DNA of 63,809 nucleotides, the filler included, from Polymyxa betae A26-41 (lineage: Eukaryota > Protista > Endomyxa: Phytomyxea): the NCBI GenBank assembly GCA_003693705.1. It is 7 parts of 7 records of this genome, joined end to end, with 100 filler letters (N's around TTAATTAATTAA, not from the genome) between each part and the next. Parts side by side here need not be neighbours in the genome. Positions count along the whole stretch, not along the records: positions 42,153 to 51,124 come from RBZT01000552.1; 6 more parts are not named here. One strand, given 5' to 3'. The notes under the pieces are model-generated. The model had not been told where the DNA came from and searched no databases. It was given only the letters and a program-made list of their open reading frames with translations. Below, in pieces: positions 20,118 through 49,228 of this stretch (position 1 is the stretch's first letter; the number at the start of each line of letters is the position of its first letter). The translations under genes were made by a program, and so were the position numbers.

Positions 20118-20269
20118 AATAGTTTTGATTCTGACTAATACACTCATAAAAACTGTGAACACTAACCTTCTTCTTCCTGATTTTGTTAAAGGAGCAGAAA
20201 ACCCGAAATAACTAATAAGCGACAAAGCATAAAAACATACTGTGTTGAATATATATTAAAGTCTTTAGG

Positions 20270-27061: not shown

Positions 27062-27179
27062 TGGACTCTTCTAAGTGATATTAGCCAGAACATAACATGT
27101 TCTAGAAGATGTAATAGAGGGAGTCTGCGGCGGGACGTCCCATAGCTGATAATTTAGCAATTGTATTAACTGGGTCGCA

Positions 27180-27960
27180 GTTCATCATACTATCAGCGAT
27201 ACTATCAAGATTCTGGTCGAGGCGCGCGCCATCGTATTTCAATCCAGGTAATGGATACATTAGAAACGGGCCCGATCGGCGACGCCCTGGCTGTGTTCCA
27301 GGCTGAATGCGCTTCCGCCTTATCATCGAACAAGGCTGACACAGACTTGGCTCGATCAGAGCTTCTCGAGCGGTTATTACATACTTCGTCGAAACTAACT
27401 CTTTCGGATGATAAGATTGTTGCCGTCATGATCAACGGGCGTTTGCGACGAAAAGAAGCCATTCTTGCATTACTGCTGGAGCAAGAGCTTTGCGCCCTAG
27501 CTCAATCTGGCCCGATTTCCGAGGCTCACATTAACGCCTTGACAGAACGAATTAAAGGAAAAAGGAACAAGAAAAGGAATTTTCCCTTCAGGGATGTTAT
27601 GAGTGACGATTGTGAGCTTAGAGCGTTCAAGAAAAGAAAATATCGCGAATCTAAAAGCAATTCTCAAGCAAGAAATCGCGGTCCAGTGTTTACTGGGATT
27701 AGAACAAGAAAGCCAAAATGTATCAAGCAGAACAAATCCTGATTCATTATCATTATTATATTCATTAGCTCAGCATACATGGGATATCATAAGCCTGTAT
27801 GATTCATCATCTTCTCTAAAGGTCAGACGACTCGACGTTCTCCATCATGAACTACATCTAGATCGCTCCTTCAGAAAATACATAACCGCTCAATTGTTCT
27901 GGCTCCAAAATTCCTGAAATCGTTTGGAAACGATGGACTGCTCAAATGTTTTAGGTCGTG
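27180..27960 (+). CDS. Hypothetical helical protein (spliced)
   Basis: 163-aa ORF 27251-27742 with flanking splice-like signals; no family recognised. Confidence 0.4.
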
Positions 27961-28012
27961 ATATAAAGGTGCTCAATGTCAAGTTTTCTCCCTTTGCCAC
28001 CATCAAGACCTT

Positions 28013-28591
28013 CTAGTTCTTGCTCGGGTTGGTTTGCGTTGTGTTCTTCTTAGCGAATGGCGACGTCCCTTGGCTCAAGATGTACGCCTGAACGTATTGT
28101 GTTAAGCCTGTTGAGCCTCGCCCTTTATACCATTGTGGTGATGGCTGATGGGCGCTCTGGTCCCATCCATATTCATGCGATGTCGTTAATGGCAGCTCCC
28201 ATTTCTCCTTGGGAGTTCGCGACCGCGACATTATAATCTGCCTAATGTGACCTGTGCCTCGATTAGCTTGAAAATAATCTCATAAAAAGCTCTAGTACGA
28301 GATTTGCCAGGTACGTCCCTATTGTTCTGTTCGGCTTCCTGTTTAGCAACCTTCAAATATTCGCTCATGCTTTTGATAATAATGGGATTGGTTCTGGTTG
28401 GTTTATCGGTGATGATATCCACTGCAGTAATGTCAGCAAATGCCTTTCATTCTAAGACGCCATATACTTGTATAAGGATTTGGAATGAATTGGGTATTGA
28501 GCCTTATATTGGCGAGCTCCTTTCGAATATGTTCGGTCCATGCCTGATGAGCTAACTTCTGCTTCTCCAGCAGCTGCTCTGGCGACGCCAT
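28013..28591 (-). CDS. FAM183: FAM183/CFAP144-like ciliary microtubule inner protein
   Basis: QAWTEHIRKE..FIPNP; TPKEKWELPLTTSHEYGW; TQYVQAY..GTSPF; three exons. Confidence 0.75.
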
Positions 28592-28714
28592 TATATCGTT
28601 AAAACGCCGAGCCAACTAACGATCCACTAAACCGTACCAGAACCTTCATTAATTACTCGTGACGTATTAACAAGGCCTTGTTGCAGCAATAAAGATTATT
28701 CATCAAATATTGAT

Positions 28715-29236
28715 TTATTCACTACCTGCAGAGGGAGATTTGATGTTCGGAACGACTTTACCATCTCTCTCAATGGCAAATTTGGATTCCAGTAGATGAT
28801 GATACAGAGCTTGTTTTGGGAGCTGATTAGATCGGCGACGTGAAGTTCCTGCTTTTGCTCCATGGCCTGAGATGGTCTTTCCCTGAGACTTTGGCGTTCG
28901 ACGATCAGTGCTTGTCTTTGGCGTACGATCGGCAGATGAGGACGACCCAGGCTTGCTTGGGATACAGCAGAAGCTCTGTGAACCAGAACGTTTCTGTGAA
29001 TTGCTCGAACTAGCTTGATGGATGGAGTGATGCTGCTTATCACCCTTCGTCAACGTTGGTTTCTTAGATAGGCTTGGTGTTAGAACTGGCTTCACCTGTT
29101 CTGTGCTTGTTCTACACAATGATGGAAGTCTTCCCAGGTCCATTCTGAATCTATCTGCGAATGAGAGTCCTGCGCTGCTTCCGCCACAGACCAGAACCAC
29201 AACCTGAATCATAACGACAATATACCACTTGATCAT
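28715..29236 (-). CDS. Small secreted Ser/Lys-rich protein (candidate effector)
   Basis: Single exon; signal peptide MIKWYIVVMIQVVVLVCGG; C-terminal LPKQALYHHLLESKFAIERDGK. Confidence 0.7.
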   Translation of the reverse strand: MIKWYIVVMIQVVVLVCGGSSAGLSFADRFRMDLGRLPSLCRTSTEQVKPVLTPSLSKKPTLTKGDKQHHSIHQASSSNSQKRSGSQSFCCIPSKPGSSSSADRTPKTSTDRRTPKSQGKTISGHGAKAGTSRRRSNQLPKQALYHHLLESKFAIERDGKVVPNIKSPSAGSE

Positions 29237-29888
29237 GTTAGAAATATCAATTGCAAAATAATCTGATCTGACTTGACTGAATCATTGCCGAGCGATCAAA
29301 CTTGACGCGATCTCGGAGCCGTTGTTTAACCTGCATACGCGTCCGTAGGCCCTGCCGGGCTCATGGCTAATAGAGGCAACAGATGAGCTTACAGATGAGC
29401 TGCATTAATGGCAGCTCATCTTTCATACGCTGTTACAAAACTCGTGTGTCTCGTACTACATCGTTAACAGCAGAATCTCCTTTGAAACTGGATCATCAAC
29501 ATTCAACTGGCTACACAACGGACAACTCAGAGTCGAACTCTTTATTGTGTTGAATTGCTCCTACTTGTGATCTCAGATGAGTCAAGCTGATCGATCTCGG
29601 CTAACAATATAATAGAATAAGCTAAGTTGCTTACTGGATTCCAAAAACCGACAAGGAAAAGCTTCCTGGCATTTTGTGAGATGGGAAATATGTGAAGTTT
29701 TTGACGTTAACTGGAGTAGGGAACGGGAACCGATTCTTGAACCAGTTTAAAATCAAGCAAATAGTATTTAATACATCTAATAATCCGATTTTGATATGTT
29801 GTGTATTCACATGAATTTATAACTCAATAGGTATAGACGAGGCTCGTTTGAGCATATCTCGAACTTAATCAGAAGAAATATACAATTA

Positions 29889-30623
29889 TCAGTTCAAAGA
29901 TGCAAACGAATCTGATGAGGCAGACTTTACAATAGATAATTTTCCGTTTTTTCTGACAATCAAGTTGGATTTGAGCAGATGATAACTTAAAGCATGCTGA
30001 GGAAGCAAATTCATAGCATCAGAAAACGATCTGGATTTTGGCATCCCTGATCGTTCTGTCTTGATGGATATGCTTCGTTCGCTGGCCTTTCCTGGCTCCT
30101 GCCGAAAATAAGCTTGCTGCTGGGTTGGATTGGAGCTTGTGGGATCTTGGGGTTTAGGAGCGAATCGGCTTAGTTGAAGAGGTTCTCGAATTGCTTTCGC
30201 AAAAGTAATGCGTCCTGGCGAATACTTTTCAAATCGACGAGGACAACGAATGGGCAGCAGGACCTTGCATGCAAGATCTGGTATTAAGCTGCCACTTGTT
30301 GTACGATGAAGTCCAGAAACATGAGCACCAACCTGACTAGTACTGCTTGACCGATGAAGATTCTTGTTCGAAGAGGTCTGCGATCTGATAACTTCTTGTC
30401 TTCTGGATTCAAGCGCTCTTTGAACAAGCTTTGAGCCGCCAGGGCGAAACTGCGCTAGAGGATTTTTCGGTTTGGCTGCAGGCCTGGTTTCGGAGCTCTC
30501 AGGCTGATGGCGGTGTTGATCAAAGTGCTGGACGAAAGGATCCGGGGCCAGCCACGAGAATACGCCGCCTTCGGATGAGGCACTGACGGCCGTGGCCAAG
30601 AGAACAATGATGACGACATTCAT
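29889..30623 (-). CDS. Secreted Ser/Arg-rich protein (candidate effector), related to 28715-29236
   Basis: Signal peptide MNVVIIVLLATAVSA; C-terminal LPQHALSYHLLKSNLIVRKNGK. Confidence 0.75.
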   Translation of the reverse strand: MNVVIIVLLATAVSASSEGGVFSWLAPDPFVQHFDQHRHQPESSETRPAAKPKNPLAQFRPGGSKLVQRALESRRQEVIRSQTSSNKNLHRSSSTSQVGAHVSGLHRTTSGSLIPDLACKVLLPIRCPRRFEKYSPGRITFAKAIREPLQLSRFAPKPQDPTSSNPTQQQAYFRQEPGKASERSISIKTERSGMPKSRSFSDAMNLLPQHALSYHLLKSNLIVRKNGKLSIVKSASSDSFASLN

Positions 30624-31468
30624 AATTGTGATTGGGGATTAACTGGATCAAACCCAAAGGCGATTAGAAATTGAATAAACAGATGTGATCGTATTCAATG
30701 TCAATACTGCACTGAGTATCATGACAGCGTGGAAGGTCTCGGCGTGACCCAGGCCGACCCCATACGCAATATGTGATCGCCCCTTAAACCCTAACCCTAC
30801 CCTAACATCTAACAACCTCTTTGCTGTTAGCAACTTTCCTGTGCTAAATGAACAGTTTCGCATGACAGGAGAGTTCGAGGAGTTTTGGCAGTAGGTTGCC
30901 GCCTTGGTTTGGCGATCCAGTGGTATGGCCGCTGGTGTCTTGACTGTGTCTACACCTTGGCCACATTGACGACCATCCAGATGTTGGTGCAGCACATGCA
31001 CCAGGACCTACTACTGCAAGATATGGTGAGTGGACTCGTGTCTGGAAGATGCTCTCGATCATATAAAACTTGAAATTATTATGTGTTTCATTTTCTCTGT
31101 TCAATATATAATCCTGCTTTAATATCATCAGTGCATGTCAATAGTTATCCGACCTTTAATCCTGAGCCTAATTACTGCTTGTTTGCTTCTATTTTTGTAT
31201 CTGTTGTACAGACGTTCACAAACTTTTCAGGTTCAGCATCTCTTTGAAGGCACAATCCGATAAACATTTCGTTGAGAGAGCTACAAATTGTCACTTTCAC
31301 ATTAGTATTTCATTTTGCAATAATATTGTATCATCTGCTTCTTCTGTTTTAAGAACCGGAAGCTTGTTTATAAACTTATGGATGACCGGATCTAAAATCT
31401 ATCTCAGTAGATATGACATTGAAGATATACTGGATAGGATCAGGCCCATATGAAATATCTGTTTAGTA

Positions 31469-32021
31469 ATGGGTGCTAATGAGAAGAAATCGTCGAGCAC
31501 AGTCGGGTTCGGGAGCGGTGATTACAAGGGCAGGGGAGCGTTATTCGACAGCTCTAATCGTAATCGACATCAACATGCTAATCGTATGGTAATTAACTAA
31601 TTCATACTTACACAATTGCTATGAGGATTAGTTAACAAAACAATAATTACAGGAAGATGAATTCTACTGCCACGAAGATCACACATTAGATAACTTTGAA
31701 CAGCAATATGGGAGATCGAATTCACTCTCGCTGAATTCAAAGCAGAAACGGTCGCCTGTACAGTCTGATGATTTCCTTTATGATCGAGTGCTTGGATCTA
31801 GAAGCCAGACATCGCCTTGTTTTCTCTGTAAATTTGACCAATATACATGTCGTCATCGACGAGCTGTACCACCACCAAAGGAGTCTGTAATGTGGTCAAC
31901 AATCACATCACACGATTGGGGATGGTAGTAGGTTTTGTATGCAGAATGATATCGTGATTAATATGCTGTTAGGTATGGAGCTATTGATGCTATGGTTAAA
32001 GGAGGGAAATCTAAATCATAA
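31469..32021 (+). CDS. Small three-exon hypothetical protein absent from the ORF track
   Basis: Exons 31469-31588, 31653-31924 and 31973-32021 splice in frame via GT-AG: MGANEKKSS..RM|EDEFYCH..CFLCKFDQYTCRH..TSHDWGW|YGAID..KS*. Confidence 0.55.
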
Positions 32022-32521
32022 AAATACATTTGAATGGGTTCAATGATTGTTAACCATCAGTATCTTGAGATGAGAAATTTGTGATTTTTGATGATAATGC
32101 CCATTAATCTGTTGGCAAAACACAAGTTCATAACAAGTACTTCTAATCATATATTGATTGCATTGTTAGAATAGTATTAGCACAAGCTCAGCTTTATGGA
32201 TGTAGCCATATTCTTGCAGTTAACGATCGATAGCTGCATGATCAAGATGATGTTGTAATCATTGTATTCAGTCAGATGACTCTTTACTCAGCTCTGTGAT
32301 CCGAATCAGATTAACCGTTAACGTGCGATTTCGCTCATGTTGTGTTCAGAACTTTTCTATATGAATAGTAGTTAGTTGAATATGCACAACAATAGAATTG
32401 TTTCGCAAAGATCTTGGAGCGATCGCAAGATATTAATCATCTGTATAGTACGCCCGAATATATTATTGCTCAGTATTCAAAACGAGTTCTGCGAGTTCAT
32501 TGTCTATCGATCTGTCTGAAT

Positions 32522-33670
32522 ATGTTTATCTATCTATCATGGTTCTTGTTATTAGCGTTATCGCAAGCGAGTTTGTTGCCTCAACATCTCCAGAGCGTCG
32601 TTATCGATGTGTCTCTGCGATTCGGTCGATCTGAATCGATCGCTGATAAGCTTGCTTCTCTATCACTGCCAAAACATGAAACATTTTCTAACCTGACTGA
32701 TCTGATCTATTGGTTACGCCTTGATCGTATCAATGCCGATATCGAGTATAACAGCTTCATAGATGAACATGAGACCACCATCACCATCATCAATGATACA
32801 ATTGTAGAATTACAAACCGCTCTCAATGATCATAAGCGAATGCTTGACGACCTCGACGACGACCTTCGCGATATTCAAGATGAGATTGACGCACGCGAAT
32901 CCGACGCTTCCGAAGCACTGAGCGAGTCGCGGTTGATCGCTTCGATTGCTAACGACATCGTTGGCGAACACGCTGAAGGTCGAGAAGGAAGAGATGCTCG
33001 TATGAAGGAGTACGAAGACGCCATACAAGTTATTGATAGAATATCACAGATGGAGGCTATTGGAGGAGCTCTCACGTTTATTGAGAGTTTGGACGCCAAT
33101 AACGATTATGTAGCTGATTGTATTAATGCTGTTCATGGAGGGAATCTTACACGAGATTTGATCATGATTCGGCACAGAATTGGGCAGAAGCTGGATCTGA
33201 CAGCCGCCATCTTCTGGCAGCAAGAAATTCGCTTTAACCTGACCATAACCGAATATCGTTCTGCGATTAACGAATATCGTGATGAATATGATGCTATTCA
33301 GGACGATATCGCTGATCTGTATGATGAATTCCATCAATTAAACGAAGATCGGGATATTGTTCAAGCTGATGTTTATTCAACAGAAGAGCTTCTTCAGGAG
33401 TCGAAAGCGGCAATGAAGGCGACGATGAGGGCGATGTTGAAAGAGGGATTGGGGTTTACAACCAAGACGAAGGTGGTGAATGCTGAACTCGATAGTCTGA
33501 ATGCTGCAATGATGTTGGTGAACACGACCATGAAAGGAGATGCCTGGCCAGACCTCTGCCAGATCGGAATGCAAGGCTGTAGACCATGTCTGTATCATGA
33601 TCAATGCTTAGAAGCACAACTCTGCTCTAAACATGGTCAATGTATTCATAATTCGGTCAATGTCACATGA
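32522..33670 (+). CDS. Secreted acidic coiled-coil protein with C-terminal six-Cys module
   Basis: Signal MFIYLSWFLLLALSQA; two long heptad regions; CQIGMQGCRPCLYHDQCLEAQLCSKHGQC; intronless. Confidence 0.8.
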   Translation: MFIYLSWFLLLALSQASLLPQHLQSVVIDVSLRFGRSESIADKLASLSLPKHETFSNLTDLIYWLRLDRINADIEYNSFIDEHETTITIINDTIVELQTALNDHKRMLDDLDDDLRDIQDEIDARESDASEALSESRLIASIANDIVGEHAEGREGRDARMKEYEDAIQVIDRISQMEAIGGALTFIESLDANNDYVADCINAVHGGNLTRDLIMIRHRIGQKLDLTAAIFWQQEIRFNLTITEYRSAINEYRDEYDAIQDDIADLYDEFHQLNEDRDIVQADVYSTEELLQESKAAMKATMRAMLKEGLGFTTKTKVVNAELDSLNAAMMLVNTTMKGDAWPDLCQIGMQGCRPCLYHDQCLEAQLCSKHGQCIHNSVNVT

Positions 33671-34815
33671 TTGCATCGAGAAGCTTTTCATGACATAATC
33701 TGACTCGGCGACTAACACAAAGGGTCGTGAAATTTCATTCGGCAGAACCAGCATTTAGTTAAACGTAGCGAAATTCAGAATGTGATCAGTTCAATAAGAG
33801 CATTGACAACAACACCTGCAAACAACACCATGAAGTTGATGACTCATCTTTCTTCGTTTGTTATTTGAATAAAATTGGTTCATGTTCTGGTCGCATTAAA
33901 CTACTAAGTATCATATCCGAGAACTGCAGGCCTATATCAATTGCCTGCGATTAACCTGTTTACATCTCAATGCCTGATACACCTAAACCATACATCATAT
34001 GAGTAATTAGATCGATTGATCCAAATTTCAGATTCGTATCACGAATAGAAAGTAAATCGGCCTTTGGAATGACCTTCGACGTTCCTCTGTGCGACGTTTT
34101 CAAGGCCTTTTAATCGGCCTTCCAACTGCGTTCGGAATGACATTCCCAGACTCTCTCGCCTTCGCAATCGCCTTCATTGCGATGATTCAATTCTCTCACG
34201 TTTTCGAATTTCGAGGACGCTGCCGATTGCTCATTGTTCTTTAAGAACCAGACCAGAAGGAATCGTATTCGATGGCGGGTGTGATCGACATCATCCAATC
34301 AGGATACGAACAGATGATCAAGTTTTCCCGGTTGAGCAAATGGTTGAGATATCATGACGTTATGGATAGAGTGAAGTCTGCCTCTGCCTCCTCCTCGTGT
34401 TAAACATCAATCGGAAGACGAACGGACAATCAAATGTACAGAACGTTGAAAAATCAATAACCGAGATGATGATTGCAGCGCGTAACCGAACGAAACGAAC
34501 CCTCTTGAATCCAACGAGACACTCGTGTACGCCCTAAAGGATTAAGCCACAATTAGAACATTTTCCAGCTCTCTTTCAGGAAGGGTTTGATGATGGATTC
34601 ACTGCTGCGTCCTTCTGAAAAACACCAAATTTAAAAGAGCAAAGTGCTTCAGCTCCATTTCATGAAGACATCGCCTGCGACCACCGTTCGCGTTGATTAC
34701 GCTCAACTTGAGAAGCTAAGCGTCTTCATGACGAGCGTATTCGCTGGCTGAAGGAAATGGAGATGAACAGAAAGCGCAAAGCCGAGGAACGCCAGGCTAG
34801 AGAATCCAATAAGAA

Positions 34816-36521
34816 TTATGTCGGATGCTGCCTTTCTCGGGCTGAATTTAGTTGATATAAGAACGGATCTGAATGGCGTTGTGGTGAAAGGATCGCATTG
34901 TCGTCAATGATGCCAAACTCAACAAACAATTGCCATGGTGAAAGCCACGCCCTCGTTAACATGATCAGATCATCGATATATAGAACAGCGATTGTGTTGA
35001 CGATTTCCAGTAGATCGTTGCCGATTCTCCCCCGAAACACAACCTGCTTCGACAAAACAGAGGACGGGGACGTCGCCGACCCTCGCTGCTCGAAATTCTG
35101 ACCTTTGTCATGCTATGCGTTCTGGTTGCCTTTTTGTTCATTTTCTTCAAATCGTGCTGCTTCTGTTTTGACTTTCCCACATTTTCTTCTCCATTAAAAT
35201 CTTCATTTATTTGTAATCATTACTACTGATTAAATTGCTTCTATAGCAGTATGCCTGCCCATTTTTGTCCGATCTTTTCAGGTCTGTTATGTCGTTCATA
35301 ACTGTTTACGTATAATTTCACTTTCGTCATACCATTACTTTGTATCATTGTTTATATTAAGAGAAATGGCTCGAATCTGGGGCACGTCAGCTATAAACTC
35401 GCTATCTCTCACGACGTCTTCTGACGATCCTGCAACCTTGAGCCGTTCGATCATGAGCCGAGCGATCTTAAAGCCGCTGGTGCTGGACACTTTTGGGCAG
35501 ATGATGCTCTGGCGTACTCTGGAGAATGTCTTCTTCACGATTATATTCCATGGTGTCATGTGTGTGTGTCCAAGATGATCCAGAAATTTGCTGGTTAAAA
35601 TCTCGAGATAGACGGCGTTGCAGAACCTGTCGCTTTGACAACCAAATCGACGCTGTATCACTCGTTCTCATACCCGGATGATGAAACCAACGGTTTCACT
35701 GATTATGCTGGAAGTAAAATTGTTTAAGCTCGGCGCCAACAGAAGAACTTTGGGTGAAGGTATTGTGGCCATCTGCATTTCTCTTTATGGGTTTTACTCT
35801 TAATTGTATTTCTGCAAAATGTTAATATATACAGCGATTCACCCCAATAAACTTTCGCCTCACTATCAATCCGCATTCTCCACACGATGGAAATCAATCT
35901 CTTTCCTTCCAGTCGTCGTTGTTCCGATAAGCAATTCGCTCAAAACAGTTCAACAAACAATGAATAATACGTACAGAAATAGCTGGGCAAGCCTTCAATG
36001 ATAATTCTCATGCTGTAAGTGAATTTTCCTTGGGACGAATATGCCATGAGACCTGGATCGCTTGCATGTCCAGTTTTGTTCCTGGCATTATATTTGTATT
36101 CGCATTCATAAGTTATGCGTGCAATGCTCGTAAGTGCTTCGCTGTGCGAATCAAAATGACGCTTTGAAGACGCTCTGTTAGACACGATCCATCCTGACTT
36201 TGCAAGGCGCTGGTGGAGGTGATAATAAACGGCTGCAATTTTGGTGCAAGACAGCGCCAGTGTCTTGAGATCGTACTGAACGATAAAAGAAATCATTGTA
36301 TAGAGAATGACGACATTACCGCGCTTGAGAGTGGAGCCCTTCTCGCGAACATTCAACGAGATGAAAGTTATGTATCTGCAAGTGACCAGTGTGTGATACA
36401 AGCCAGAGATATTTTTGTAAAAGACCTTTCTGCCGGACTTTTTAGAAGAAAATCCGACAGAAAGGTCTGGTTGTTTGACTGACTGTAAAAATTGCGAAAT
36501 TTTCTTAAAAAATCGCCCCAT
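34816..36521 (-). CDS. Hypothetical multi-exon protein
   Basis: Chain of minus-strand ORFs (35940-36521, 35335-35661, 34816-35055); no family recognised. Confidence 0.35.
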
Positions 36522-36530
36522 GTCGATATT

Positions 36531-37151
36531 AGAGACAATTCGGGACGACTTGTTTCAAATTTGAGTTTGAGTTTTCACCCCGTCACAATGACTGAAACTC
36601 AACGGTAATAAAACGAGAATTCGGTGACTGGATGGTTTTGAGTTTCAGTTTCGCTATTGGTACCTCTATCCTCGTACGATTTCATGTTGCCCGCGATGTC
36701 GGAAAAGGAGGCAATCCTATTTATTATCTCAATATTCGCTGCTACCGGTTCCGATATATCCGAGTTCCTCGACATCATGAACTACATTTTGCAGCACGGC
36801 TACTTGCGATTACGTCATCGTAATCCAACTATGATTAACTACAGAAAATATTTCAACGAAGATTTAGACGATGTTACCGCTAAGCACATGTTCAAGTTCA
36901 CTATTCCAGAACTTCGACAGTTGACAGTCGCTCTGCGGTTGCCGAACGTCATTATTACTGGCGCACAGGACGCTGTCCCTGCATTAGAATCTTTAGCATT
37001 GGTATGCCGCCGTCTGGCGGAGCCTAGCCGTCTGTTTACTGTCGCAAACGAGTTCGGTAGGTCTCCCTGGGCATGTTCAAGAGTCATCGATGCTACCGTC
37101 AACATTTTATACGAAACGCATCGCGATCTCCTATTCTTCAATGAGTATTTA
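36531..37151 (+). mobile_element. 5' part of a Harbinger element with transposase N-terminus (HTH_Tnp_4-like), cut by gap
   Basis: FKFTIPELRQLTVALRLP..LALVCRRLAEPSRL..EFGRS..SRVI; preceded by TTA at 36528-36530 and subterminal gagtttca/tgaaactc motifs. Confidence 0.75.
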
Positions 37152-37752
37152 NNNNNNNNNNNNNNNNNNNNNNNNNNNNNNNNNNNNNNNNNNNNTTAAT
37201 TAATTAANNNNNNNNNNNNNNNNNNNNNNNNNNNNNNNNNNNNNNNNNNNNATGATGCAATGACAGAACGAAGCCGATTCTTTCCAATTCCTCTTTCAAC
37301 ATATCAAAGGTCTATTGAAACGGTCATCTCACAAATATCACAGACCGATGGAGAATGATCCCCAGGGTCGCGACTTTCACTTGAAATCTACAGAATATTA
37401 AAATGCAACTCTGGATGACTGAGCACAGTAGCTATTCCGAAAATTCGCCTAAATAGTCACTTTGCCTGTCAAAGTAAAGTAGCTATTATTTTAACCCCAA
37501 AATTCGTTATTTATGACAGAGCACACCCTTAGTGTGTACAGGAGAATTCATTCGTTATATTGAGCGGACACTATTTAAATGGTTAATTGCAACAAAACGA
37601 ATCACTAAAGATGAAGGTGTAAATCGATGTTGCACTTCTCAGGGGACATCATCTACGGAGCACTTTTCAATCGCGTTTGTTTAAACAGTCTTGAAAGGAT
37701 ATTGCTGTTGAGATTCATATCGGCAATCCGGGCATCAGCAGGCCATCGTCGT

Positions 37753-39283
37753 ATGGCGTCTGCATGGTCGTGGTCTACGACCTTATGCCTGGGCCATTCT
37801 GGACAGCATCGATCTGTCCCAATTCGGGTCCAATCCGACCGTCCTCAGCAAGATCTGCCTTCCCTCGTTAATCGAGCCGCCTTCGTCTTATGCTTTGTAC
37901 CCTGTGGTAATTCCCAACAAGTAATCAACACGGTTCCATGAGAGATCTGCTGTTCCTCAATATTAACGTTCTCAGATAGCAGAAATTGTGGCGAAAACGC
38001 TTTCGGCTACGAGCCAATCTCGCATACAAGTGAATACAGATGATACTGAAGTTATTGTCGATGCTAGCCATGCTTTCGTCGTGTATGGTGACCTCCAGAG
38101 GCTATTACATTTGCTTACATTTTGTGGCAGTGAAACTCATTCTTGGGGTCGTGTAGAAATTCTACACGAAACCACAGAGACTGGTCTTTATCATCTGCAT
38201 TTGTCGCCTCACGAGCAGATTCCTCGCCATATTCACAAACATCTTGCAGAAGTTGAGATGATTATCAGCCAGGATATCTGGTGTCAGGAGGGTCCCATGA
38301 AACCCAACGATATTGTTGCCTGGCCTCGTCTGGCACCTCATTCCTATCATAATAAGAGTCCAGATAAGGTGCTCTCAATTCTGTGTGTGAACCAGCCGCG
38401 TTTCGATCATGTTGATGAAATTGTCGTTGGTTTGACTCAACTCCTCATCTGATGCTCGCTTGTTAATTCATTATCAGATGGATCTATAGCGAATAGCTCG
38501 ACATTACAAGAAGCTCGTAGGGAAATCTGCCATGATCCTTGGAGTAATATGCTAGAGAGAGGTGCCGAATTTAGGTTTCAGGGCGCTTTATCTGGTAATC
38601 GGCTCGATGTTCTATGGTTTTTCCTGCGATTAAAACCATATAACGACAGGCCAGGACGTAACTTACTTCGTTAGGAACGAAATTCGTCAAGATGCCGGTG
38701 AGAAAGAGCCATGGCTCTCTCGTTTTAGCTAAAATAATAACAGATGCGGCTCTAATTGCGATTCTGGATGGCTCTAAGATCGTTATCTGTCAGCATCATA
38801 AGTTTGTTCAATCGGCTTCTTGAGGGTTTATATCTAAATCTACCGTAGACGTGGCTGGGAGCTTCCTGGTGGCAAGCGTGATCCGGGAGAGACTATCGAA
38901 GAAACGGCTCGCCGTGAGGTAACTGCTCAAGTATCTCTAGGTTTAGTTGAACGTTGCTAGGCATTGGAAGAAACAGGGATCATCTTAGCCCCAAACCTCA
39001 TATCATTAGGCTATTTCATCGGTACCGGGTAATAGCAATAGTGTTGCCAAGAAAGTGTAGCTTACAATCTTATAGGAATGGTCCTAAACATGTCAAGCAA
39101 GTTTTCATGGCAACTATACAGGAACAAAGTAGTGAATGGAACAAGGACGAAATACTTCAGGTCGGCCGTGCAGACCCGATGGATTTCGCACGGCGATCAG
39201 GAAGCGATTCGGATGTGAGCTTTCTATGTCGGGACTCGGTGGTTCCCATAATAGCATCCCTTCTTCAATTCAGAATTCCATAA
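37753..39283 (+). CDS. Cupin + Nudix hydrolase fusion, possibly with a degenerate FolB-like N-terminus
   Basis: Cupin IPRHIHKHLAEVEM..WPRLAPHSYHN; Nudix box RGWELPGGKRDPGETIEETARRE|ALEETG split by an intron; YtkD-like C-terminal SFLCRD. Confidence 0.8.
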
Positions 39284-39290
39284 TGACAAT

Positions 39291-42052
39291 TTATGTTGTT
39301 CGGTTTCGCTTCTTTACTTGGTAGACAACAGTTTGAATAGGTACCAGATCACCTGCCAGTGAAGGATATTTCTCTCGAATAATCTCGTCGAATCGCTGAT
39401 AATATTTCAGAAGCTGCATTGACACTGCTTTTAACACGGATTCCTCCCATCTTGTTTCGGTACCATTTCCGGAAAATTGCCCGTTGCAGATAATGTTGGA
39501 GATCGCATCTACTCCTGTTCAATTGTTCAGCAAACAAAAGGCGTTACAACTTTAAAAAACCTTGTTTCCATTGAGAAGCGTATATTTTGATTGCTGTTGA
39601 CGCTAACTTTGAAGAGTCACTTGGCAATGAAGAACCCTAGTTCGAATTCAGAGAATGTTCACGAAACTGCACAGAAGTACATCGTATGATTTGATGAATG
39701 TCAGCATCGATTTGAATTCATCACGAGAGTGAAGAAATTCAATGCCATAGGCAGCAACGTGTTGCTCCGCTAGGTCATCGAATACGGCGCTATCCTCAGA
39801 ACCAACCTATTCAATTGTTCAAACTTTTAATCGAGTAGTTCTTGCTGGACAAACCGTGCTTTTCAGCTCAAAAGCAACATGCTCCAATTGATTGATTAAA
39901 AAAACCATACGATCACTAAAAAACGGTTATCAATTACGAACAAATCTTAACTTTGAATGCCTTTGCGACAAAGTCGCTGCCATTTGGTTCAAGAGCGAGA
40001 CGAAACTGTTTCGTACTCTCATTAATGACGATTTCACGATTTCATCCCTGCAACCAGTATTATAGAAAATACCTCGCAGGACGTTGCCTGCCTTACGAAT
40101 TGAATGGAGCTGTATTTAGTGTCACCAACGCATGACAAAGTGCAGCGAATCTGTAAACCGGTTAGAAAGTCAAGCATCGTGGAATGGGCCAGCACACTAC
40201 CTGCGAGTGATTACATGTGCTGAATGAGGGGTATAATCTGGCGAGCTGATTTTGTAAGTAGTTATACTGGAGCAATGGCCATCGAATACAGTCTAACAAA
40301 ACATCAGGTTCGAAAAAACCCCGAAATGAGTAGGACATTCTTACTTTGAACCTCGGCCACACTAGCATACTGAATCTATCAAACATGTGATCAAGGACAG
40401 TAATGGTCTGGCATCAAATAAGATTGCAGACAACGTTTTAGAGCACACTAACAGCTGCACCAGGCTTAGTTTTCAGAGCAGTTCTATGCTTCTCGCAAAC
40501 GCGAACCTAGAAGCGCAATGTTGATATTAATAATGCAAATCAACCACATGCTTACAGTTAATAAGATTCCAATAACATCAAATGACGTGTTCAGATATTG
40601 CTCGAGATCTGTCTGTATCAGGCCTACACAAAAGGAGAATAAGTTCAACGAAACAACCAGAGGATGCCAAAGACCGATTGTCTTAACGAAGATAGAATTA
40701 GACAGGTTTGGGTCATGGAAGAAATCAGAGACATATTGATGTTCAGAGACAGCAGTATTAGCAAGCAAATGAAGGACGGAGTCCCAGACATCCTCCCAAG
40801 CCAATACACGTCCAGAATCATCCATTACACCAGGACTAAACGATGGGGAAACCAGCACCTTCCAATTAGCATTCAGCGTGAGCCGAAAACAACAACAGCT
40901 CAGCCAGCACCTTATGACGATCACCCAGCGATAAAATATTCAGAATGTGCTGTTCTGGCTTCTTGGATCCAACGCCAAACAGCCCATTGCTTTTCGAAAT
41001 CTCTGTACCACATAGCAAATCGGTCTTGTCGATCAAAGACAACTAGACAAGAATCATTGGAGAGCAACCAATCAGTTTTAGTGTAAAGTACGTTTCTGTT
41101 CAAGCGCTTCAAGTGGATCGAATGAACTTCGTTAATATAACCTTGGAAAAAACTGGATAGCAATGTCGACATTGTGGTCGTGTAGAAGTTGACAATCTGA
41201 ACACGATAAATCAATTTGCATTCCGCAAGATGAGAACAGAAAAAATCGGACTTCGTTGGCAATCGGTTTGGCATGCTCGTTTAAGAACTCGTTCAGGTAT
41301 TTATATTTTAAAAGCACACCTTGCTTCACTTGTACATTTGACCGAGATTTCTGCAGTTCGTTGATCTTCTGCATCAGAAACTGCCTGATCCGCGATATCT
41401 TTTCCATCACGTTAGCAATAGCAAAACAAGAATCCCTAAAAGCGTCAACGTACAGCTTTGTCGGTCAACGTACGAACGTGCTGGCTCGTCTCAATCAACG
41501 ACGGATGCTCATCCGGTTGACGAAGATACATGATCTTGGAATGCAGCTCGGCAAGGTGATCGATGAATTTCGAGTCGATAGCATCTTGGCACAATCCTCT
41601 GTACAAAGGCAGTTTCAGAAGAGAGTCTGAAACGGGGAATAACGACCAACTTAACAAGCTCTGGTTTAATAACAACTGTGTTGATGAATTTTGATATTTT
41701 TCTCTCTGCTGATCGCCGGTTCCTTAATTTGATGTTCATCGACAAACTCTGGAATACACTGAGTTCGTTCCTTTGAGAGAAATAATAATAAAAAAATGAA
41801 AAATCAACCTCGACTTGGAGCTTCTTAATGTCAGAGCTGATTCCACCAAGATTTTCTTGGAAACCTCTCAGCCTGCGCAAATCGGTTGTAAGGCCAACAA
41901 GAGCTTCGCATTGCCGTATTCAACTAACATCGTTTCTAATCCTTCCAATATAGAATCGCATGTTTGAATTTCTCGATACAAATCAGCAACATTGTCACTA
42001 TGTTCGACAACTGTATTTTCATCTCAATAAGCTTGGAAGTGTAATGGCACAG
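39291..42052 (-). CDS. VPS52: Vacuolar protein sorting 52 (GARP/EARP subunit), 5' end in gap
   Basis: NVADLYREIQTCDSILE; GFQENLGGISSDIKKLQ..SMNIKLRNR; LLKYKYLNEFL; YTTTMS; MLVWPRFK; C-terminus DLVPIQTVVYQVKKRNRTT*. Confidence 0.9.
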
Positions 42053-42239
42053 NNNNNNNNNNNNNNNNNNNNNNNNNNNNNNNNNNNNNNNNNNNNTTAA
42101 TTAATTAANNNNNNNNNNNNNNNNNNNNNNNNNNNNNNNNNNNNNNNNNNNNGGATTAAGGATTAATCGACGATAATCAAGGTCCGATTGCCCCATAACA
42201 TTTCTAGTTTCTTATATCCTAACCCTACCTGTATAAGCA

Positions 42240-42950
42240 ATGACTGTATCGAGCTCGAGTCCGATCTCAATCGATTCTGATGATGGCGATCGTATTAAGT
42301 TCCTGATCTATACGCGATTGACAGATCCCAACCAGCCGCTAGCGACACCTCGTCAAATCTATGGATTTCTCGAAGATGAGTTGGACGTGAAGCCAGGCGG
42401 GCTTTATCGTGATCGAATCCTTCGTCGATCGATTCGCACCTGGATTGAACAGATCACCGACTTCATTACCGCCCATTCCAGAACTTTTCGTCGACCACGA
42501 CCTTCGAATCCACGACCAGCAAAACCAAAATCGCCTTGCTTTGAAGAATATCGCCAGCTGAGGAAGCTTTGCACGTTGAATAAGATTACGTAAGTTGATT
42601 TGTGTGATCACTGATAGATGTTCCTCAAATCGTACAGGTTGAATCGAATATCTCTTTCAGAGCTCTCACTGATAGATAAGGTCGCCGTCCTTCGTGATAC
42701 TTTATCAGAGGCAGGCGTCGAATCGAGCGATACAGACCAGACGAGTTGTGTGTCATCCAAACCAAGCCCCATAATTGATATGAACATGATCGAAACAATT
42801 GGTGGTACCTCTGGGACTCGAAAGCGAAAGCAAGCATTGGACGACGATTTTCTCCAGCTAAATGAGTCAAAGACGAAGCGTTCCTCAATCACCAGCTGTG
42901 CCAGTGAGAAATCGTTTGATGATTTCGATGCATTTCGACCGAAGCAGTAG
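42240..42950 (+). CDS. HIRIP3-like/DEK_C + CHZ-like histone chaperone
   Basis: TPRQIYGFLEDELDVKPGGL (DEK_C-like); QLRKLC..KVAVLRDTLSEAG..IDMNMIE..RKRK; short intron at ~42590-42618. Confidence 0.5.
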
Positions 42951-43069
42951 TCGCTGCAGGTTCCAAAATAAATCTTACTCAAATTCAAAACAAAAAATCC
43001 ATCAGTGCTTCTGATAGATTTTTGGACTAGAAGTAGACATGCCGTCTAAAATTTAAGAGAGTCGAAACT

Positions 43070-43869
43070 ATTATATTGACGAGAAGCGTCGATTGCTTTG
43101 AGTTTGGCAGCGAACAGAGTTTGACAGCGTACAGAGTTTAAATGGTTCACTCAGAAATTATCAATTTCCGTCTCTTTTTGAGCCACTTTGCTCTGTATCT
43201 TCGGTTATCAATTGATTTAGGGAAACTAACCTGAACGATAAATCAGTCGTTGATTTTCATCACAGCGGATGTAAATTACCTGAAGAAAATACTCGGGACA
43301 ATCAAGCAGAAACTCTTGGGAAGAGATATCAACAGCGACTGCTTTGATATCATCCTGCAAACATAAATTAGACTTCTCCAAAGGTCTTCCGAAAGCAGAT
43401 AATTACAAGTAAAGGGAGATGGATTTCCAGGACAATACCAGAATTTGTTCTTGTTAGTGAGTAATTAGGAGTCTCTTTGACTTCTTCGATCAAAATCTTT
43501 CGTAGAGGTTTATCATTCTTCTGTTGTTCAGCTGAAAGTCGAATGCCATCAACATTATCGATATCCTCCTCAGGCAAGACCGAATTATTGTCGGTCAGAG
43601 CCGATTTAAAAGGCAGAATGATTGAGGGGTTCTGTTTCGTCCCATTGTTCGGCTGATCCTGTTTAGGCTGTTGTTCACGTTCAGGTACTTTCCCCGGTCC
43701 TTCTTTCAGCTGCTTCGAAACAAAATCCTTATACGCTGACGGGTCGGATTCAGCTAGATTATCCAGGAACGACCATAGATGATCAACGGTCTTCCTGAGA
43801 TCGCCTACAACCCAGCTGGAATCATTAGGCCTAATAAGATATGACAACAGTCACCTTACCTTTATCCAT
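43070..43869 (-). CDS. PIH1D2: PIH1D2-like dynein assembly/R2TP co-chaperone
   Basis: LWSFLDNLAESDPSAYKDFVSKQLKEG (PIH1D2 N-terminal signature); ILIEEV; CS domain TPNYSL..IVLEIHLP; 3' end approximate. Confidence 0.7.
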
Positions 43870-44000
43870 AGCCGACCTCTCAACCTGACTATGGAAAATA
43901 GTCTGAGAAAAATTTGCGCGTTTTTCCAGTTTTTTTTTTGAAGATCTTTCATATCTGTCGTTGTCTGATTTTATTACTCAAAGGTGCCAGCTTCTAGAAC

Positions 44001-46249
44001 ATGCCGAACGTGGTTTCCAAGCAGTGTGATAATGAGACATGTCTGTTTCATCGGTGTCGGAACCTAGATTACAAACACGAAGGATCAGTTGAGGGAGATA
44101 TTTTTTCTAGATCATCTGTATCGATTGGGACTGTTTAGTCGCAGCCACGATGCAGGAACATCCCAGCAAGCTTATCCTGGGATGGATGGGCCATCTGGTT
44201 GCTCCAGAATGGGACGATAGAAAGGCCTACAACAATTGCTATCATTGCAGTCAGAGGTTTCAGATCGGGCATCAACATCATTGCCGCTTATGTGGCCATA
44301 TGTTCTGCTCGATGTGCACTGCCAAGTATCTGGTCAGTTCTCAATTCAAACGCAAAGACAAGGACGGGCCTGATCGTGTCTGTTTTGGTTGCCGAAATCA
44401 ATGCCTTGAACGCAGAGCTAAATTCGTCAAAAATGAACCGGCGTTGAAGCCACAAATGGTCCTAGCATACGACAACGCCGGCATAATGCATATTTACCCT
44501 CCTGTTTGGGCTAAAGCCGGATCGTACATGAACTGCAAAGTAGATCAAACTCAATTTAAATGCGCCGATTATAACTATGGTTAGCTATGTCACGAGATGT
44601 TGGTTAAGGGCAATACGCATCATTGTCGAGCTTGTGGTGAGATGTTCGATAAGAACTGCACGACGAAGATGGAAGTACCGCAGGCGTTTAAGAAAAAGCC
44701 TAAAAATGGTCCATGTCGAGTATGTTACGAATGCAGATATCACCTCCTTAGTGGGAAAGCCGTATTAGGTAGAATAGTACCTCAGTTTTTGTCGAATGAA
44801 AACTGAAGCATTTTGGAAGATGAAAGGCCAATTTCAGCATTGAACAGTAATGTTTCGCTGCTCAACACCGAATCATTACCTGCGGCTAAATTGCTGCCTG
44901 TATCGATCCTTTGGGAAGATACCAACGAGAAGCCGATCGTTACATTGAATGTCGTTGGACAATGTACGCTGGAGGAGATCAACGATCGTCTATTGCGAGC
45001 AATGCCTGACATGAAACCGGTTGAGTATACGTATATCTGCCGAGGCCGGCCCATCTTTAAAGAACATTGGTCTGGTAGAACTGATATTCAGGTTGTGAGC
45101 TGACTCTTGGTAGGGGGGTGTTTAATGCCGATTTCATATCTCCAGAAATTATTATCCGGCAAGGCACATTGGAGGTGGTTTCCGACGATCAACCTGATTT
45201 AAAGTTCTGGTTGTTCCTATATTTGGATTCACCGTTAACAATCGTTTAGGACTATTATGACAGCGCCTGCCAATATCAATCAACAAAATCATATATCGCC
45301 ACGAATGCAATCAAAGATGGTAGCACTGCATAGCAGCTTTGAACCCGATAAATCAACGTAAATATCGTTGACTGAAGAAAAACGAAAATATTGAAAAACT
45401 GATTTTTTTAAAGCAAAAAACAACCCGAAAACTTCCATGGGGGGAAAAGGTACCCTTTCCTTCGAGAATAAGCATAAAAACTCATGCATTTTTTAGAGCG
45501 AGTGAAATCATCAAGTCGACAACTATTTTAAAGCCTGTTAAGCCACTAAACATTGAACATAACAAGGTGTTTTAGTTGAATAGGCAAATATTGGGCTTTG
45601 ACGTTGCATTATTAGGATGCCTATGGAAACTTTATCGAACGCTCAACTCAAGCGAACATCAACCGGCCAAATGTTAACATCCTGAAACAGGTAATACAGA
45701 ATCTTTCCAAAACGTACCAACTTAGTTACTATAGGAGCACATGGATAAGTTGGAAGAGAAGCCTCTCGATCGTTTGCAGGAGCCATTCAGTGAGAAGCTG
45801 GATCTCTCAAATCAAGAAGCAGCAGAAATGAAATCGCCAATTTCCGATGCGAAGCCATTAAAGGTCGGAACACAGTAAACTGTCCCAAACAATAGACACT
45901 TATAGCAGTTCAGGCGGACGAGAAACAATCTGACAACGAAATGGCCCAGGTGAACGGCGACTATCTGCTCGTGCGATCACGTTATGATTTTAAGACCGAC
46001 AAGGCAACGCTGCTATCATGTTCAGTTGACGAGAACCTCAGTGAGTTCTTGTTAAGCTTAGACCAATAACAATTTAGCCCTGGTATAGTAATAATTAAAA
46101 GGCCAGAGAAAAGCGGTTGGTGGCTAGCACAGAATGCATCGAAACAGAAAGGATGGGTCCCGGCACGATACATGCAGATACTGCATGAATACTCAAACCA
46201 GCAGGCGACTTCGACTACAACCAAAGCAATCGAATACAATTATGATTGA
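44001..46249 (+). CDS. Tandem FYVE-like zinc fingers + ubiquitin-like + SH3 protein
   Basis: HHCRLCGHMFCSMC..RVCFGC; HHCRACGEMF..RVCYEC; TLEEINDRL..YTYICRGRPI; SH3 RYDFK..GWWLA..KGWVPARYM. Confidence 0.8.
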
Positions 46250-46844
46250 AGCGAAACATGGAAACATTGCAACTCACCAATAAGGGATTCTCCAAGCGTC
46301 GTTGTAACATTACAAACGAAGTAGTAGATGATTTACTTTAAATTGGCACGCTGTATACAGCGTTTGTTAGTAGCAAAATATGAGCTGTTTACAAAAAAAG
46401 CCAGCTTGATTAGGTAATTTTGTTGAATGAATTCCGAACATGATAAATCGGATTATGAGACGGTTTTAAAACGGTGTCGAAGTTGGTGAATCAATTATAG
46501 TTGTGGCGCTGTCACAACAGTATACAGCCCAGCGAGTTTCCAGAACTGCAGAACCTGCATGAATAGAATCCCACTTCTTAGACGAATGTGTAAAAGCAAA
46601 AACGCTCAAGATATAAAACTTCGCAGATCTCGGTAATGTCTTACGATAACGATTGCTGTCATGCACAGGACAATGAGACAACGTTGCACATTCCGAGCTG
46701 AGAAGTCTATCCAGACTCGAAACAGCCGTCGGTTATCACGAATGGCTGAAGGTGCTATCAATTAGCTACCCTAAAACGTAAATGAAGGGCTGCAGACGAT
46801 TGTCTGCGCTATGAGACGTGATTTTCTACGGGGGTCATTCTCAA

Positions 46845-49228
46845 ATGAACATTGGCACCAGAGGATCGCGAGTCTCCGTCGACTTTGTATGGGTCCCAGA
46901 TAGCCAGGCGTCGGCCTGCTATTCCTGCCAGGCTGGTTTCACGTTTTTCAGGCGGAAGGTGAGAGTTGTCATCCTTAGTCACCATTATCGTACTGACTCT
47001 GAGCGTTTCGTTCGAGCTGATCTTGTTTCATAGCAGTAAGCTTCAAAACTTTGATGATATTTTGTTTTGAAAAATTTGTATTAGTCATTGCCGGCTGTGC
47101 GGCCGTGTATTTTGTGATTCGTGCTCCAATAAACGGTTAGCTGTAGACAAAAACGCCGATCAGTTTGTCGTCCATCGCGTCTGTTCCATGATCGGCAATT
47201 TGTGTTGACTTCTAATAAGTATTTAGGCCTGCAATGCTTGCTATGATCGGGTTTTAATTAGCGAACAGCCCGCTGCTACCCGAAACGGTGATGATCTCTC
47301 AACAAACCTTATTTTATACAAGACCCAAACGCTGTGTGTGTCCTGTTCGCTTATTGATCAGCGAGGTTTTGAGCCTGTTGATGCTGTCGTATGGATTTCT
47401 GGATTTTCATTTTGTGTTGAGAATGCTCAATTCCGTTTTAGGTGAGGCAGAAAGGGTCAGAAGTGTTTCTCGAACGGCATTGCTCGATGCATGCATCAAA
47501 TCCCGTCCTATATTGCTCTGATGCAGCATTCTTTCGTAGAATGTTTCAGTATGACCGCTCCTGGTTTAAAGCGAATGTCGAGGAGCAAATCCATAATCGA
47601 CACCAACAGCCATTTAAGGTCACTCTTCGTGTAAGTTTATCTCCGTTATGAAAACTGTATATAACAATATAATCTCTAGTTATTTTCGAACGGTCGATTT
47701 ATGACCATTGATGCAATCGATGCGTCCTTGCAGCGCTTCTGTGCGATTCACGATCCAGAGAATTCTTTCATTGTGACCTGTGATGGAGGTAGTGTAGACG
47801 GACTTCGTACACTTTACAATTGATTGGGCTAATAGGGCTTTTACCAAGTTTGTCGCATGTCAAACATTTCAACAGGCTGATTTGTCATATGTTAAATTCA
47901 ACATCACGTTGTATATTCGCGATCGAGCTGCTTTTCGATCGACTTCGTGATATCTCTCTCTTGCATGATTCTTGTCTTTTGAAAGGTACACGACCTGTTA
48001 CTTCTCCTTCCTAGTGTTTATCGTCGCATAGGTCGAGTGTTTCCTTCTGTCCGTTATCACTTAACAGAGAATGGACAAGCTGTAATTGCAGTTTTTGTTG
48101 TTCCATATCTTTTCTCATTGTCAAGATTTTTAGACTGCCGTTAAGGAACTCTCGGAGCTGGTATCCGTTTTGAGGAATATTATCGACATAAAACTGTGTT
48201 TGAGGCTCTCTTTTGATCGCGAGAATCCAGATCTCAGGTTGATGCTTTCATTTGCTCAATCACAGAGGTATTTTGTTTTGCATTTCTCTATCCTCTACTC
48301 AACCTTCCTACAGAGACATTATTCGGTATCTATTGCTTTTCCCTACTAGATCAAATAAGGAATTGCTGTTGCGCGCTGTCAGCCCTAATGTGCAGGTGGA
48401 ACCGCTTTCTGAGAATGTGGATCCCCTGAGCGTAATAGACCATATCTGTAAAGCAAAGGGTTTGTATCTCTTAAGGTTATCTTGACATTCTGAGCTTCGT
48501 TCAGGATTGGCCCGCTCCGATTTCTTTCCTTTATGTGCTTATCAAAGTACTGTACATATGCTGTATTGTGAGTTCATTTTTGACAGCCGCTTTAGTGCTG
48601 GAGCCGCTATTCGCATTGCTGGGATTACCGCGGTTTCCAGTGAAAATGTCGCCTTTCTGTGCGTTTATTTGTCCGATTTCAGTCAAACAAGGTGATTGCT
48701 GCCGATAATTTAACTAAATCAGTTGCTCTTATGTTTTTAGATGGAACAATTTACGCCATGGCGCGCTTAATTGATGTTGCTGCTTTACATGATGCCTTGA
48801 TACCTTTTGTTGAGCAATGGCGCCGTGGTCGACCAAAACGCAGCGACGTTTCACAGATCCGCCAGGTTGGATCCCAGATCGTATTCATAATCCACAATAA
48901 TGGGATTTCGGTAGTGCCTACAAACATTTCTGCAAAATTTTCCCGCGCCATCACCGCTGCTCAACGATATAATATCGATTCTGTCATGTAATGATCCCGT
49001 CAGTTTAAAGCGATTGCAAGAATTCTCCTCATCGCTCCAGTACATTGTTATTCAAGTATTGTATCAATTGTTTCACTTTCTTGTGCTCATATCGGTATGC
49101 AGAATACTATGGATATTGGTTCAATGGATTTACGGCGCAAATGCCAATGTTCGGCTGCATTAACATCATTACCGTCTGGAGCTTCTTCTGGAGCTTTCGC
49201 TGCTTCTTGCATCGGAGATTGTTTTTAA
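46845..49228 (+). CDS. FYVE domain fused to a degenerate MJ0619/Tes-like radical-SAM homology region
   Basis: WVPD..CYSC..RRKHHCRLCGRVFC..C..ACNAC; then TQTLCVSC..VDAV|VRQKGSEVFLERHCSMH..LYCSDA; SDFFPL..SPFCA..MARLIDV; IVIQ|NTMDIGSMDLRRKCQC..AASCIGDCF*. Confidence 0.7.

Follow-up and report, generated by a model that had tools for sequence, protein, structure and literature searches.

A spliced gene of Polymyxa betae joining a FYVE finger to the zinc ribbon and C-terminal domain of a Tes-like protein

Tetraether synthase (Tes, also known as GDGT-MAS) makes the membrane-spanning lipids that distinguish archaea. In the present study we describe a gene of the phytomyxean protist Polymyxa betae A26-41 that appears to combine parts of this enzyme with a FYVE zinc finger. 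The gene, referred to here as the FYVE-Tes gene, lies at 46845-49228 on the plus strand of the window, by which we mean a 63,809-nucleotide (nt) stretch of DNA made up of seven parts of seven records of GenBank assembly GCA_003693705.1, joined end to end with filler between them. The part that holds the gene, positions 42153-51124, comes from record RBZT01000552.1. All positions given below count along the window.

The described Tes protein MJ0619 binds its metals through C9, C12, C33, H36, C73, C77, C80, C102 and C105 (Lloyd et al. 2022, PMC9433317). GDGT-MAS was found to bind two lipids, including phospholipids of E. coli, without headgroup specificity, binding them in part in a pocket adjacent to its C-terminal cluster domain (Lloyd et al. 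2022, PMC9433317). The homologues in the literature and databases searched were only archaeal or bacterial, and no eukaryotic Tes homologue was reported in that literature. Likewise, no FYVE protein with a Tes-like or radical S-adenosylmethionine (SAM)-like body was found in the literature or protein collections searched.

The FYVE-Tes gene is a spliced eukaryotic gene, and its protein of ∼552 amino acids (aa) consists of four parts. We read these as a FYVE finger, a Tes-type zinc ribbon, a divergent middle region and a Tes C-terminal domain, in a protein that would be recruited by phosphatidylinositol 3-phosphate (PI3P) and have a non-catalytic role in binding lipid and/or iron-sulfur (Fe-S) clusters; we put the probability of this reading at roughly 60%. 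By sequence, the protein is a rare, apparently non-catalytic descendant of a prokaryotic lipid enzyme.

Gene model and the FYVE finger

Forward-frame translation of 46500-49600 gave a single open frame of 551 codons, ending at TAA and distributed over 14 exons. With a candidate microexon of 2 nt the count becomes 15 exons and 552 codons. All introns are GT-AG, and 12 of 13 are 40-76 nt long. The DNA has ∼43% G+C and closely spaced genes, and its introns most often measure 45-50 nt. Only intron 1 (46959-47084) departs from the usual length: it measures 126 nt and puts exon 2 one base out of frame. The exons are as follows.

46845..46958, +, exon 1: ATG and first half of the FYVE domain (WVPD, first CxxC, ..FFRRK)
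47034..47035, +, candidate microexon CA: mends the frame and supplies the first His of R(R/K)HHCR
47085/6..47178, +, exon 2: HCRLCG.., with the second and third FYVE CxxC pairs
47227..47388, +, exon 3: last FYVE CxxC (RACNAC), a linker of ∼25 aa and first ribbon CxxC (YKTQTLCVSC)
47442..47630, +, exon 4: second ribbon half (CSMH), LYCSDAAFF and a linker where the N-auxiliary motif is expected
47680..47788, +, exon 5: here the divergent middle region begins (..IVTCDGG), placed solely by continuity of frame and of GT-AG borders
47836..47985, +, exon 6: divergent middle region, placed by frame and GT-AG continuity, without a significant match
48032..48081, +, exon 7: divergent middle region (..LTENGQA), placed by frame and GT-AG continuity, without a significant match
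48134..48237, +, exon 8: divergent middle region (..LRLSFD..), placed by frame and GT-AG continuity
48314..48459, +, exon 9: last stretch of the middle region, running into the C-terminal domain (..PLSVIDHICKAKG), placed by frame and GT-AG continuity, without a significant match alone
48505..48546, +, exon 10: DFFPL, putative equivalent of the family motif DFxP
48587..48691, +, exon 11: a 29-residue spacer and SPFC, putative counterpart of the family HxxC cluster cysteine
48741..48865, +, exon 12: GTIYAMARLIDV.., putative counterpart of the family motif G..iPitRFvDv
48915..49055, +, exon 13: helical portion of the C-terminal domain, with ..LQYIVIQ at its end
49103..49228, +, exon 14: TMDIGSMDLRRKCQC.. 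and ..AASC.., putative counterparts of FxDxxNxDxxRxxxC and PFC, followed by the TAA stop

Upstream of exon 1 the reading frame is closed by a stop at 46812, and AG is absent between that stop and the ATG; the donor of exon 1 is GTGAGA. The candidate microexon within intron 1 is preceded by a good acceptor, ..TTTCATAG, and followed by a good donor, GTAAGC, and its use would divide the intron into introns of 75 and 49 nt. The two bases CA are exactly those needed, completing a CAT codon and yielding RRKHHCR. A search of both strands of the 9-kb piece for AG-NN-GTRAG sites returned only this one, AG-CA-GTAAGC. The alternative is a GA-AG donor for intron 1, which gives RRKVHCR. A first-pass annotation of the window had proposed that splicing out short GT-AG introns yields a FYVE domain with RRKHHCR; the introns are borne out, and the motif is obtained with the microexon and not by plain GT-AG splicing. 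If real, a 2-nt microexon would be among the shortest exons known.

The FYVE domain named in that annotation is recognized by Pfam PF01363 in both of the first two exons, scanned singly. Exon 1 scored 24.6 bits over profile positions 2-24, and exon 2 alone reached 32.1 bits over positions 26-49, above the cut-off of 27.8; position 25 stays unfilled unless the microexon is used. Exons 1-3 supply WxxD and eight zinc-type cysteines arranged as four CxxC pairs (CYSC, CRLC, CDSC and CNAC). Among the PI3P-type motifs, WVPD is present, RAC replaces RVC, and RRKHHCR is found only with the candidate microexon, the outcome otherwise being RRKVHCR or a frameshift. The protein begins with a FYVE zinc finger, putatively of the PI3P-binding type. 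In exon 3 one stop-free stretch of 54 codons spans the end of the FYVE domain and the start of the ribbon. Because this exon alone holds the final CxxC of the FYVE finger as well as the opening CxxC of the ribbon, the fusion is independent of any splice.

The Tes-type zinc ribbon and the C-terminal domain

Family members were gathered with a spaced DNA pattern built from the MJ0619 ligand numbering, which identified more than 120 loci in archaeal and bacterial genomes; chance expectation, estimated by hand, is ∼0.03. The archaeal loci are true Tes (647-721 bits against an NF045702 cut-off of 450), the bacterial loci reach neither the cut-off for Tes (NF045702) nor that for TrsS (NF045646), and archaeal and bacterial loci alike carry PF23545 and Radical_SAM. 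In these loci, which span many bacterial phyla and the archaea, the nine metal ligands are spread over 97 residues with identical spacing; the module of N-terminal ribbon and two clusters is therefore length-invariant across the superfamily. A local hidden Markov model (HMM) was built from 94 members, 10 archaeal Tes and 84 others. Homology searches were run exon by exon, and joined coordinates were used only for the frame, for cysteine and spacing counts, and for the alignment row. In the chain alignments each exon was aligned singly to the profile, and the colinear scores were summed and compared with those of shuffled exons. Placement of exons with MAFFT --addfragments was noisy and was dropped.

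When the pieces of the locus were ranked with the 94-member HMM, exon 4 came first, exon 14 second and exon 3 fourth, tied with one minus-strand piece, and the plus-strand matches of exons 3, 4 and 14 follow the colinear order of the profile. The whole-body chain gave z 4.1 against the pooled HMM (2 of 2500 shuffles as high) and an exon-order permutation p of 0.04. Splitting the chain by clade and region placed its signal entirely in the C-terminal exons.

Exon 4 aligned to a 44-member family alignment with an hhalign probability of 92.4% (E 5.3e-7), and to the Tes model NF045702 over profile positions 20-65 with E 0.0019 and 16.9 bits, the best single-exon score. The same exon scored 18.7 bits with the local family HMM, its best ungapped diagonal had z 5.6, and it matched the HMPTM zinc ribbon PF23545 weakly (13.3 bits), while exon 3 aligned to family profile nodes 3-14. 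The CxxC..CxxH site reported in the first-pass annotation corresponds to C106, C109, C137 and H140 of the gene model, with 27 residues between the cysteine pair and CxxH where the family has 20. On these profile matches, exons 3 and 4 clearly encode a zinc ribbon of the Tes/HMPTM type with a rubredoxin-like CxxC..CxxH site, the ribbon with which all radical-SAM enzymes of the Tes/GDGT-MAS (MJ0619) family begin.

One relative was recovered. A full HMMER pass with exon 4 over 1.84 billion cluster representatives returned a single match, P0001, an open reading frame (ORF) of 131 aa at 557-952 of a 1863-nt Logan contig from run ERR12035931. Its residues 1-46 are 56% identical to exon 3, identity to exon 4 is 48%, the linker is held in common, and P0001 itself scores 26.8 bits with PF23545. 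All four ribbon ligands are kept. The intron between the ribbon halves lies at the same position as intron 3 of the FYVE-Tes gene, and the frame stays open across it, adding 15 codons. The ribbon appears to be under constraint. Two further short ORFs lie downstream of P0001 on its contig. A 5.8-billion set gave only P0001 itself, profile scans of genomes and metagenomes with exon 4 found zero relatives, the ESM Atlas returned only low-score unnamed clusters for exon 4, and zero GDGT-MAS matches came from PDB sequence searches, whether exon 4, exon 12 or a profile of two sequences was the query.

Exons 10-14 (∼180 aa) scored 61.3 bits against the C-terminal nodes of archaeal Tes, compared with 40.5 ± 3.0 for shuffled exons (z 7.0), and across the chain tests z was 7.0-7.9 with none of 1000 shuffles as high. 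In an independent check, the best ungapped diagonals of exons 10, 11, 12 and 14 fell at offsets 67, 69, 70 and 70 out of ∼300-390 possible, with z 4.6, 3.8 and 4.8 for the first three; exon 13 had its second-best diagonal at offset 67 (z 2.6). BLASTP with exon 10 matched 90 of the 94 family members at positions 301-315, and with exon 14 matched family positions 378-404 (26 aa, 50% identity, E 0.003). Using hhalign, exon 12 aligned to archaeal Tes at template positions 355-381 (P 0.018), and exon 14 aligned at the expected place (P 0.012 and 0.041). DFFPL, SPFC, DGTIYAMARLIDV and TMDIGSMDLRRKC, which had been proposed from the sequence as family motifs, lie where they had been placed and are colinear with the family profile.

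The three cysteines invariant in archaeal Tes (C340, C456 and C471) have counterparts here, as do several of the invariant residues of Asp, Arg, Pro and Gly, in agreement with the earlier proposal that the C-terminal cysteines remain. From their conservation these cysteines are the putative ligands of the C-terminal cluster, beside Met439. On the profile comparisons, exons 10-14 are homologous to the auxiliary-cluster domain at the C terminus of Tes.

The distance from the DFxP proline to the HxxC cysteine is 29 aa, against 27-28 in all ten archaeal Tes and 4-7 in the other 84 members, and from the HxxC cysteine to the FxD aspartate there are 102 aa where archaeal Tes have 100-113. Since these spacings match those of archaeal Tes, they point to an archaeal-type architecture for the domain. 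In a tree from 130 exon-wise aligned columns the row for the window protein sits on a branch of 2.87 without supported neighbours, and because of this long, unplaced branch a donor cannot be named.

A converse arrangement was seen among the prokaryotic loci. In one clade (L068, L017, L021, L057, L011, L038 and L111) and in some Planctomycetota loci, the CX3CX2C motif is kept and Val, Glu and Ser replace the three C-terminal cluster cysteines; in the window protein the cysteine triad is kept and CX3CX2C is lost.

The middle region and competing explanations

The motifs of the N-terminal auxiliary [4Fe-4S] cluster and of the SAM cluster are invariant in all 94 prokaryotic members, with CX3CX2C at one fixed spacing. 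In the window protein the N-auxiliary motif (C73, C77, C80 and a His in MJ0619) is gone, and there are zero cysteines between C148 and C207. The first-pass annotation had found no CxxxCxxC motif and had pointed out that an unseen exon restoring it would mean an active enzyme. Across all six frames of 42153-51124 the motif is absent, apart from an artefact at 47077 that straddles intron 1 and FYVE exon 2, and no such exon was found. The 94-member HMM detected no radical-SAM-like piece among all stop-free pieces of the locus on either strand. By its sequence the protein cannot belong to the usual kind of radical SAM enzymes, and SAM cleavage has presumably been lost.

Exons 5-9 (∼190 aa) scored 49.4 bits against the nodes of the radical-SAM core, compared with 45.0 ± 3.2 for shuffled exons (z 1.4; 88 of 1000 as high), and had zero Pfam or NCBIfam matches to the radical-SAM core (PF04055) or to the family. 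Exon 8 gave weak BLAST matches near family positions 183-233, for which the core test was not significant. From the ribbon His to DFFP the protein has 238 aa where Tes has 273, a shortfall about equal to two lost cluster loops. Seven cysteines are scattered through the region (C207, C220, C239, C248, C269, C311 and C369). A near-gapless alignment of the middle region on the C-terminal diagonal, through GG, T245, K293, N320 and DIIRY, was considered and set aside as unsupported (banded z 0.9). The equation of FMTIDAIDASL..IVTCDGG with the family's EPT..GGEP is likewise unsupported, as this region lacks significant similarity to the radical-SAM core (z ∼1). The homology to MJ0619/Tes proposed in the first-pass annotation is thus upheld by profile matches in the zinc ribbon and in the C-terminal domain; the central part, where the radical-SAM barrel is expected, is not detectably related by sequence (core z 1.0-1.4), so that a scaffold kept whole would be conjecture.

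The FYVE finger would recruit the protein to PI3P-rich endosomal or phagosomal membranes, where the Tes-derived part would act without catalysis. The ribbon would hold a metal, the C-terminal domain might carry a [4Fe-4S] cluster, and a remnant of the Tes lipid pockets could bind lipid tails. Because GDGT-MAS binds lipid near its C-terminal cluster and the protein has a FYVE finger, the most likely role is, by analogy, that of a PI3P-recruited, non-catalytic lipid- and/or Fe-S-binding module. The lipid sensor or transfer role suggested in the first-pass annotation would likewise be conjecture.

Several observations weigh against this interpretation. The frame between exons 1 and 2 needs the candidate microexon or a non-canonical donor, and plain GT-AG removal of intron 1 leads to a stop after 48 codons. 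From four RNA runs filed under the species label, 0 reads were placed over 43950-49900, in runs from which the organism is possibly absent. The P0001 fragment of 131 aa is the only known relative. Taken alone, the hhalign matches of exons 12 and 14 are weak (P 0.01-0.04), and the counterparts of Met439, His459 and Tyr459/460 are Gln, Ser and Ala, as placed by a short local exon-wise alignment with a possible error of ±2 residues. The middle exons do not stand out against the core nodes in any of the tests (z 1.0-1.4, 88-149 of 1000 shuffles as high), nor when banded onto the C-terminal diagonal (z 0.9), so that the region may be a barrel too degenerate to be recognized by sequence, or else replaced or unrelated sequence.

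Some of these points would also suit a decaying relic, that is, a Tes-like gene acquired from a prokaryote, to which introns and a FYVE exon were added and which has become a pseudogene, unexpressed or without function. The broken frame under plain GT-AG splicing, the 0 placed RNA reads, the loss of the catalytic motifs and of core similarity, the very long branch (2.87) and the near-absence from databases are all as such a relic would predict. We nevertheless consider it improbable, given the 513 further codons that stay open across 13 correctly phased introns, the four ribbon ligands and the intron position kept in P0001 at 48-56% identity, the retention of three C-terminal cluster cysteines together with several of the invariant residues (Asp, Arg, Pro and Gly), and the presence of the exact two frame-mending bases inside the only AG-NN-GTRAG site of the piece. 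A protein still in use could instead be a metal or Fe-S sensor of redox state, iron or oxygen on PI3P membranes, in which the ribbon and the C-terminal cluster do the work and lipid binding is irrelevant. The metal sites are indeed the best-kept features (CxxC..CxxH and the three C-terminal cluster cysteines), and the least conserved part, the middle region, is the one that in GDGT-MAS forms the SAM pocket and part of the substrate pocket. Yet a helical region of ∼100 aa and a 29-aa spacer are kept at lengths typical of archaeal Tes, and the cluster-adjacent counterparts of Met439, His and Tyr459 are changed; a sensor of this kind seems about as improbable as the relic.

The seven scattered cysteines of the middle region would allow a further alternative, in which the protein is still a radical enzyme whose SAM cluster is bound by sequence-distant cysteines, as in Dph2-type enzymes, or is supplied by a partner. 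This is very improbable: CX3CX2C is missing where 94 of 94 prokaryotic members keep it at fixed spacing, GGEP is reduced to GG at best, and similarity to the core is undetectable. Returning to the PI3P-recruited, non-catalytic module, a bolder version can be framed in which an archaeal-type Tes gene, brought into a eukaryote by archaeon-to-eukaryote transfer or kept as a relic of an archaeal ancestor, was rebuilt as a PI3P-targeted, Fe-S-bearing and lipid-tail-binding endomembrane protein. We hold this version to be doubtful. If true, it would add lipid sensors or carriers of a new class, derived from a radical-SAM lipid enzyme. The archaeal-type C-terminal spacing offers lipid biology a concrete case for the study of gene flow to eukaryotes from archaea, or of inheritance from them.

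Neighbouring genes and comparison with known systems

Upstream of the FYVE-Tes gene, at 44150-44806 on the plus strand, lies a second FYVE gene, which encodes a pair of FYVE fingers (Pfam 46.2 and 34 bits). It appears as two ORFs in one frame, split by an in-frame GT-AG intron of 45 nt (44539-44583) that contains TAG and is of the same size class as the introns of the FYVE-Tes gene. As the two FYVE-encoding genes adjoin, FYVE genes are in tandem at this locus. Downstream, on the minus strand, the gene at 49529-49996 has a bHLH domain (Pfam HLH 27.8 bits, bHLH_IRO3 31.2 bits) and runs convergently toward the FYVE-Tes gene's 3' end.

The closest described system is the archaeal clade of GDGT-MAS/Tes (MJ0619; PDB 7TOL, 7TOM; NF045702). 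The window protein has in common with it the N-terminal rubredoxin-like CxxC..CxxH ribbon and, in the C-terminal domain, DFxP, the HxxC-type cysteine, G..RF/LxDV, FxDxxxxDxxR..C and the final cysteine. It differs in being encoded by a eukaryotic gene with 13-14 spliceosomal introns and in carrying an N-terminal FYVE finger. It also lacks the [4Fe-4S]N motif (C73, C77, C80, His) and CX3CX2C, its core is unrecognisable, the counterparts of Met439 and Tyr459 are replaced, and its single exons score far under the 450-bit cut-off. The bacterial Tes/TrsS-like proteins with an HMPTM ribbon, for example those of Planctomycetota, Myxococcota and Bacillota, have the ribbon and the C-terminal motifs in common with the window protein, and one small clade among them (L105, L120, L008, L052 and L093) gave the best match to exon 14 and chain z of 6-8. 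Unlike the window protein, all of these bacterial proteins keep both N-terminal clusters, and their DFxP-HxxC distance is 4-7 residues instead of 29.

FYVE-domain proteins (PF01363), known as PI3P-binding endosomal adaptors, have in common with the N-terminal part WxxD, the four CxxC pairs, the R-x-C ending and, provided that the microexon is used, R(R/K)HHCR. A parallel to the presumed loss of catalysis is offered by radical-SAM-like proteins without the SAM cluster, for example NCBIfam TIGR04347, 'pseudo-SAM/SPASM', compared here by its description only, a family derived from radical SAM enzymes in which the SAM-cluster motif is lost and the auxiliary-cluster domain kept; unlike the window protein it is prokaryotic, of the SPASM type and without FYVE. 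A spliced eukaryotic descendant of Tes would bring the family into a third domain of life. As a radical-SAM enzyme that appears to have shed its SAM cluster while keeping the ribbon and auxiliary-cluster domain, joined to a phosphoinositide-reading finger, the FYVE-Tes protein would be a pseudoenzyme with a testable role.

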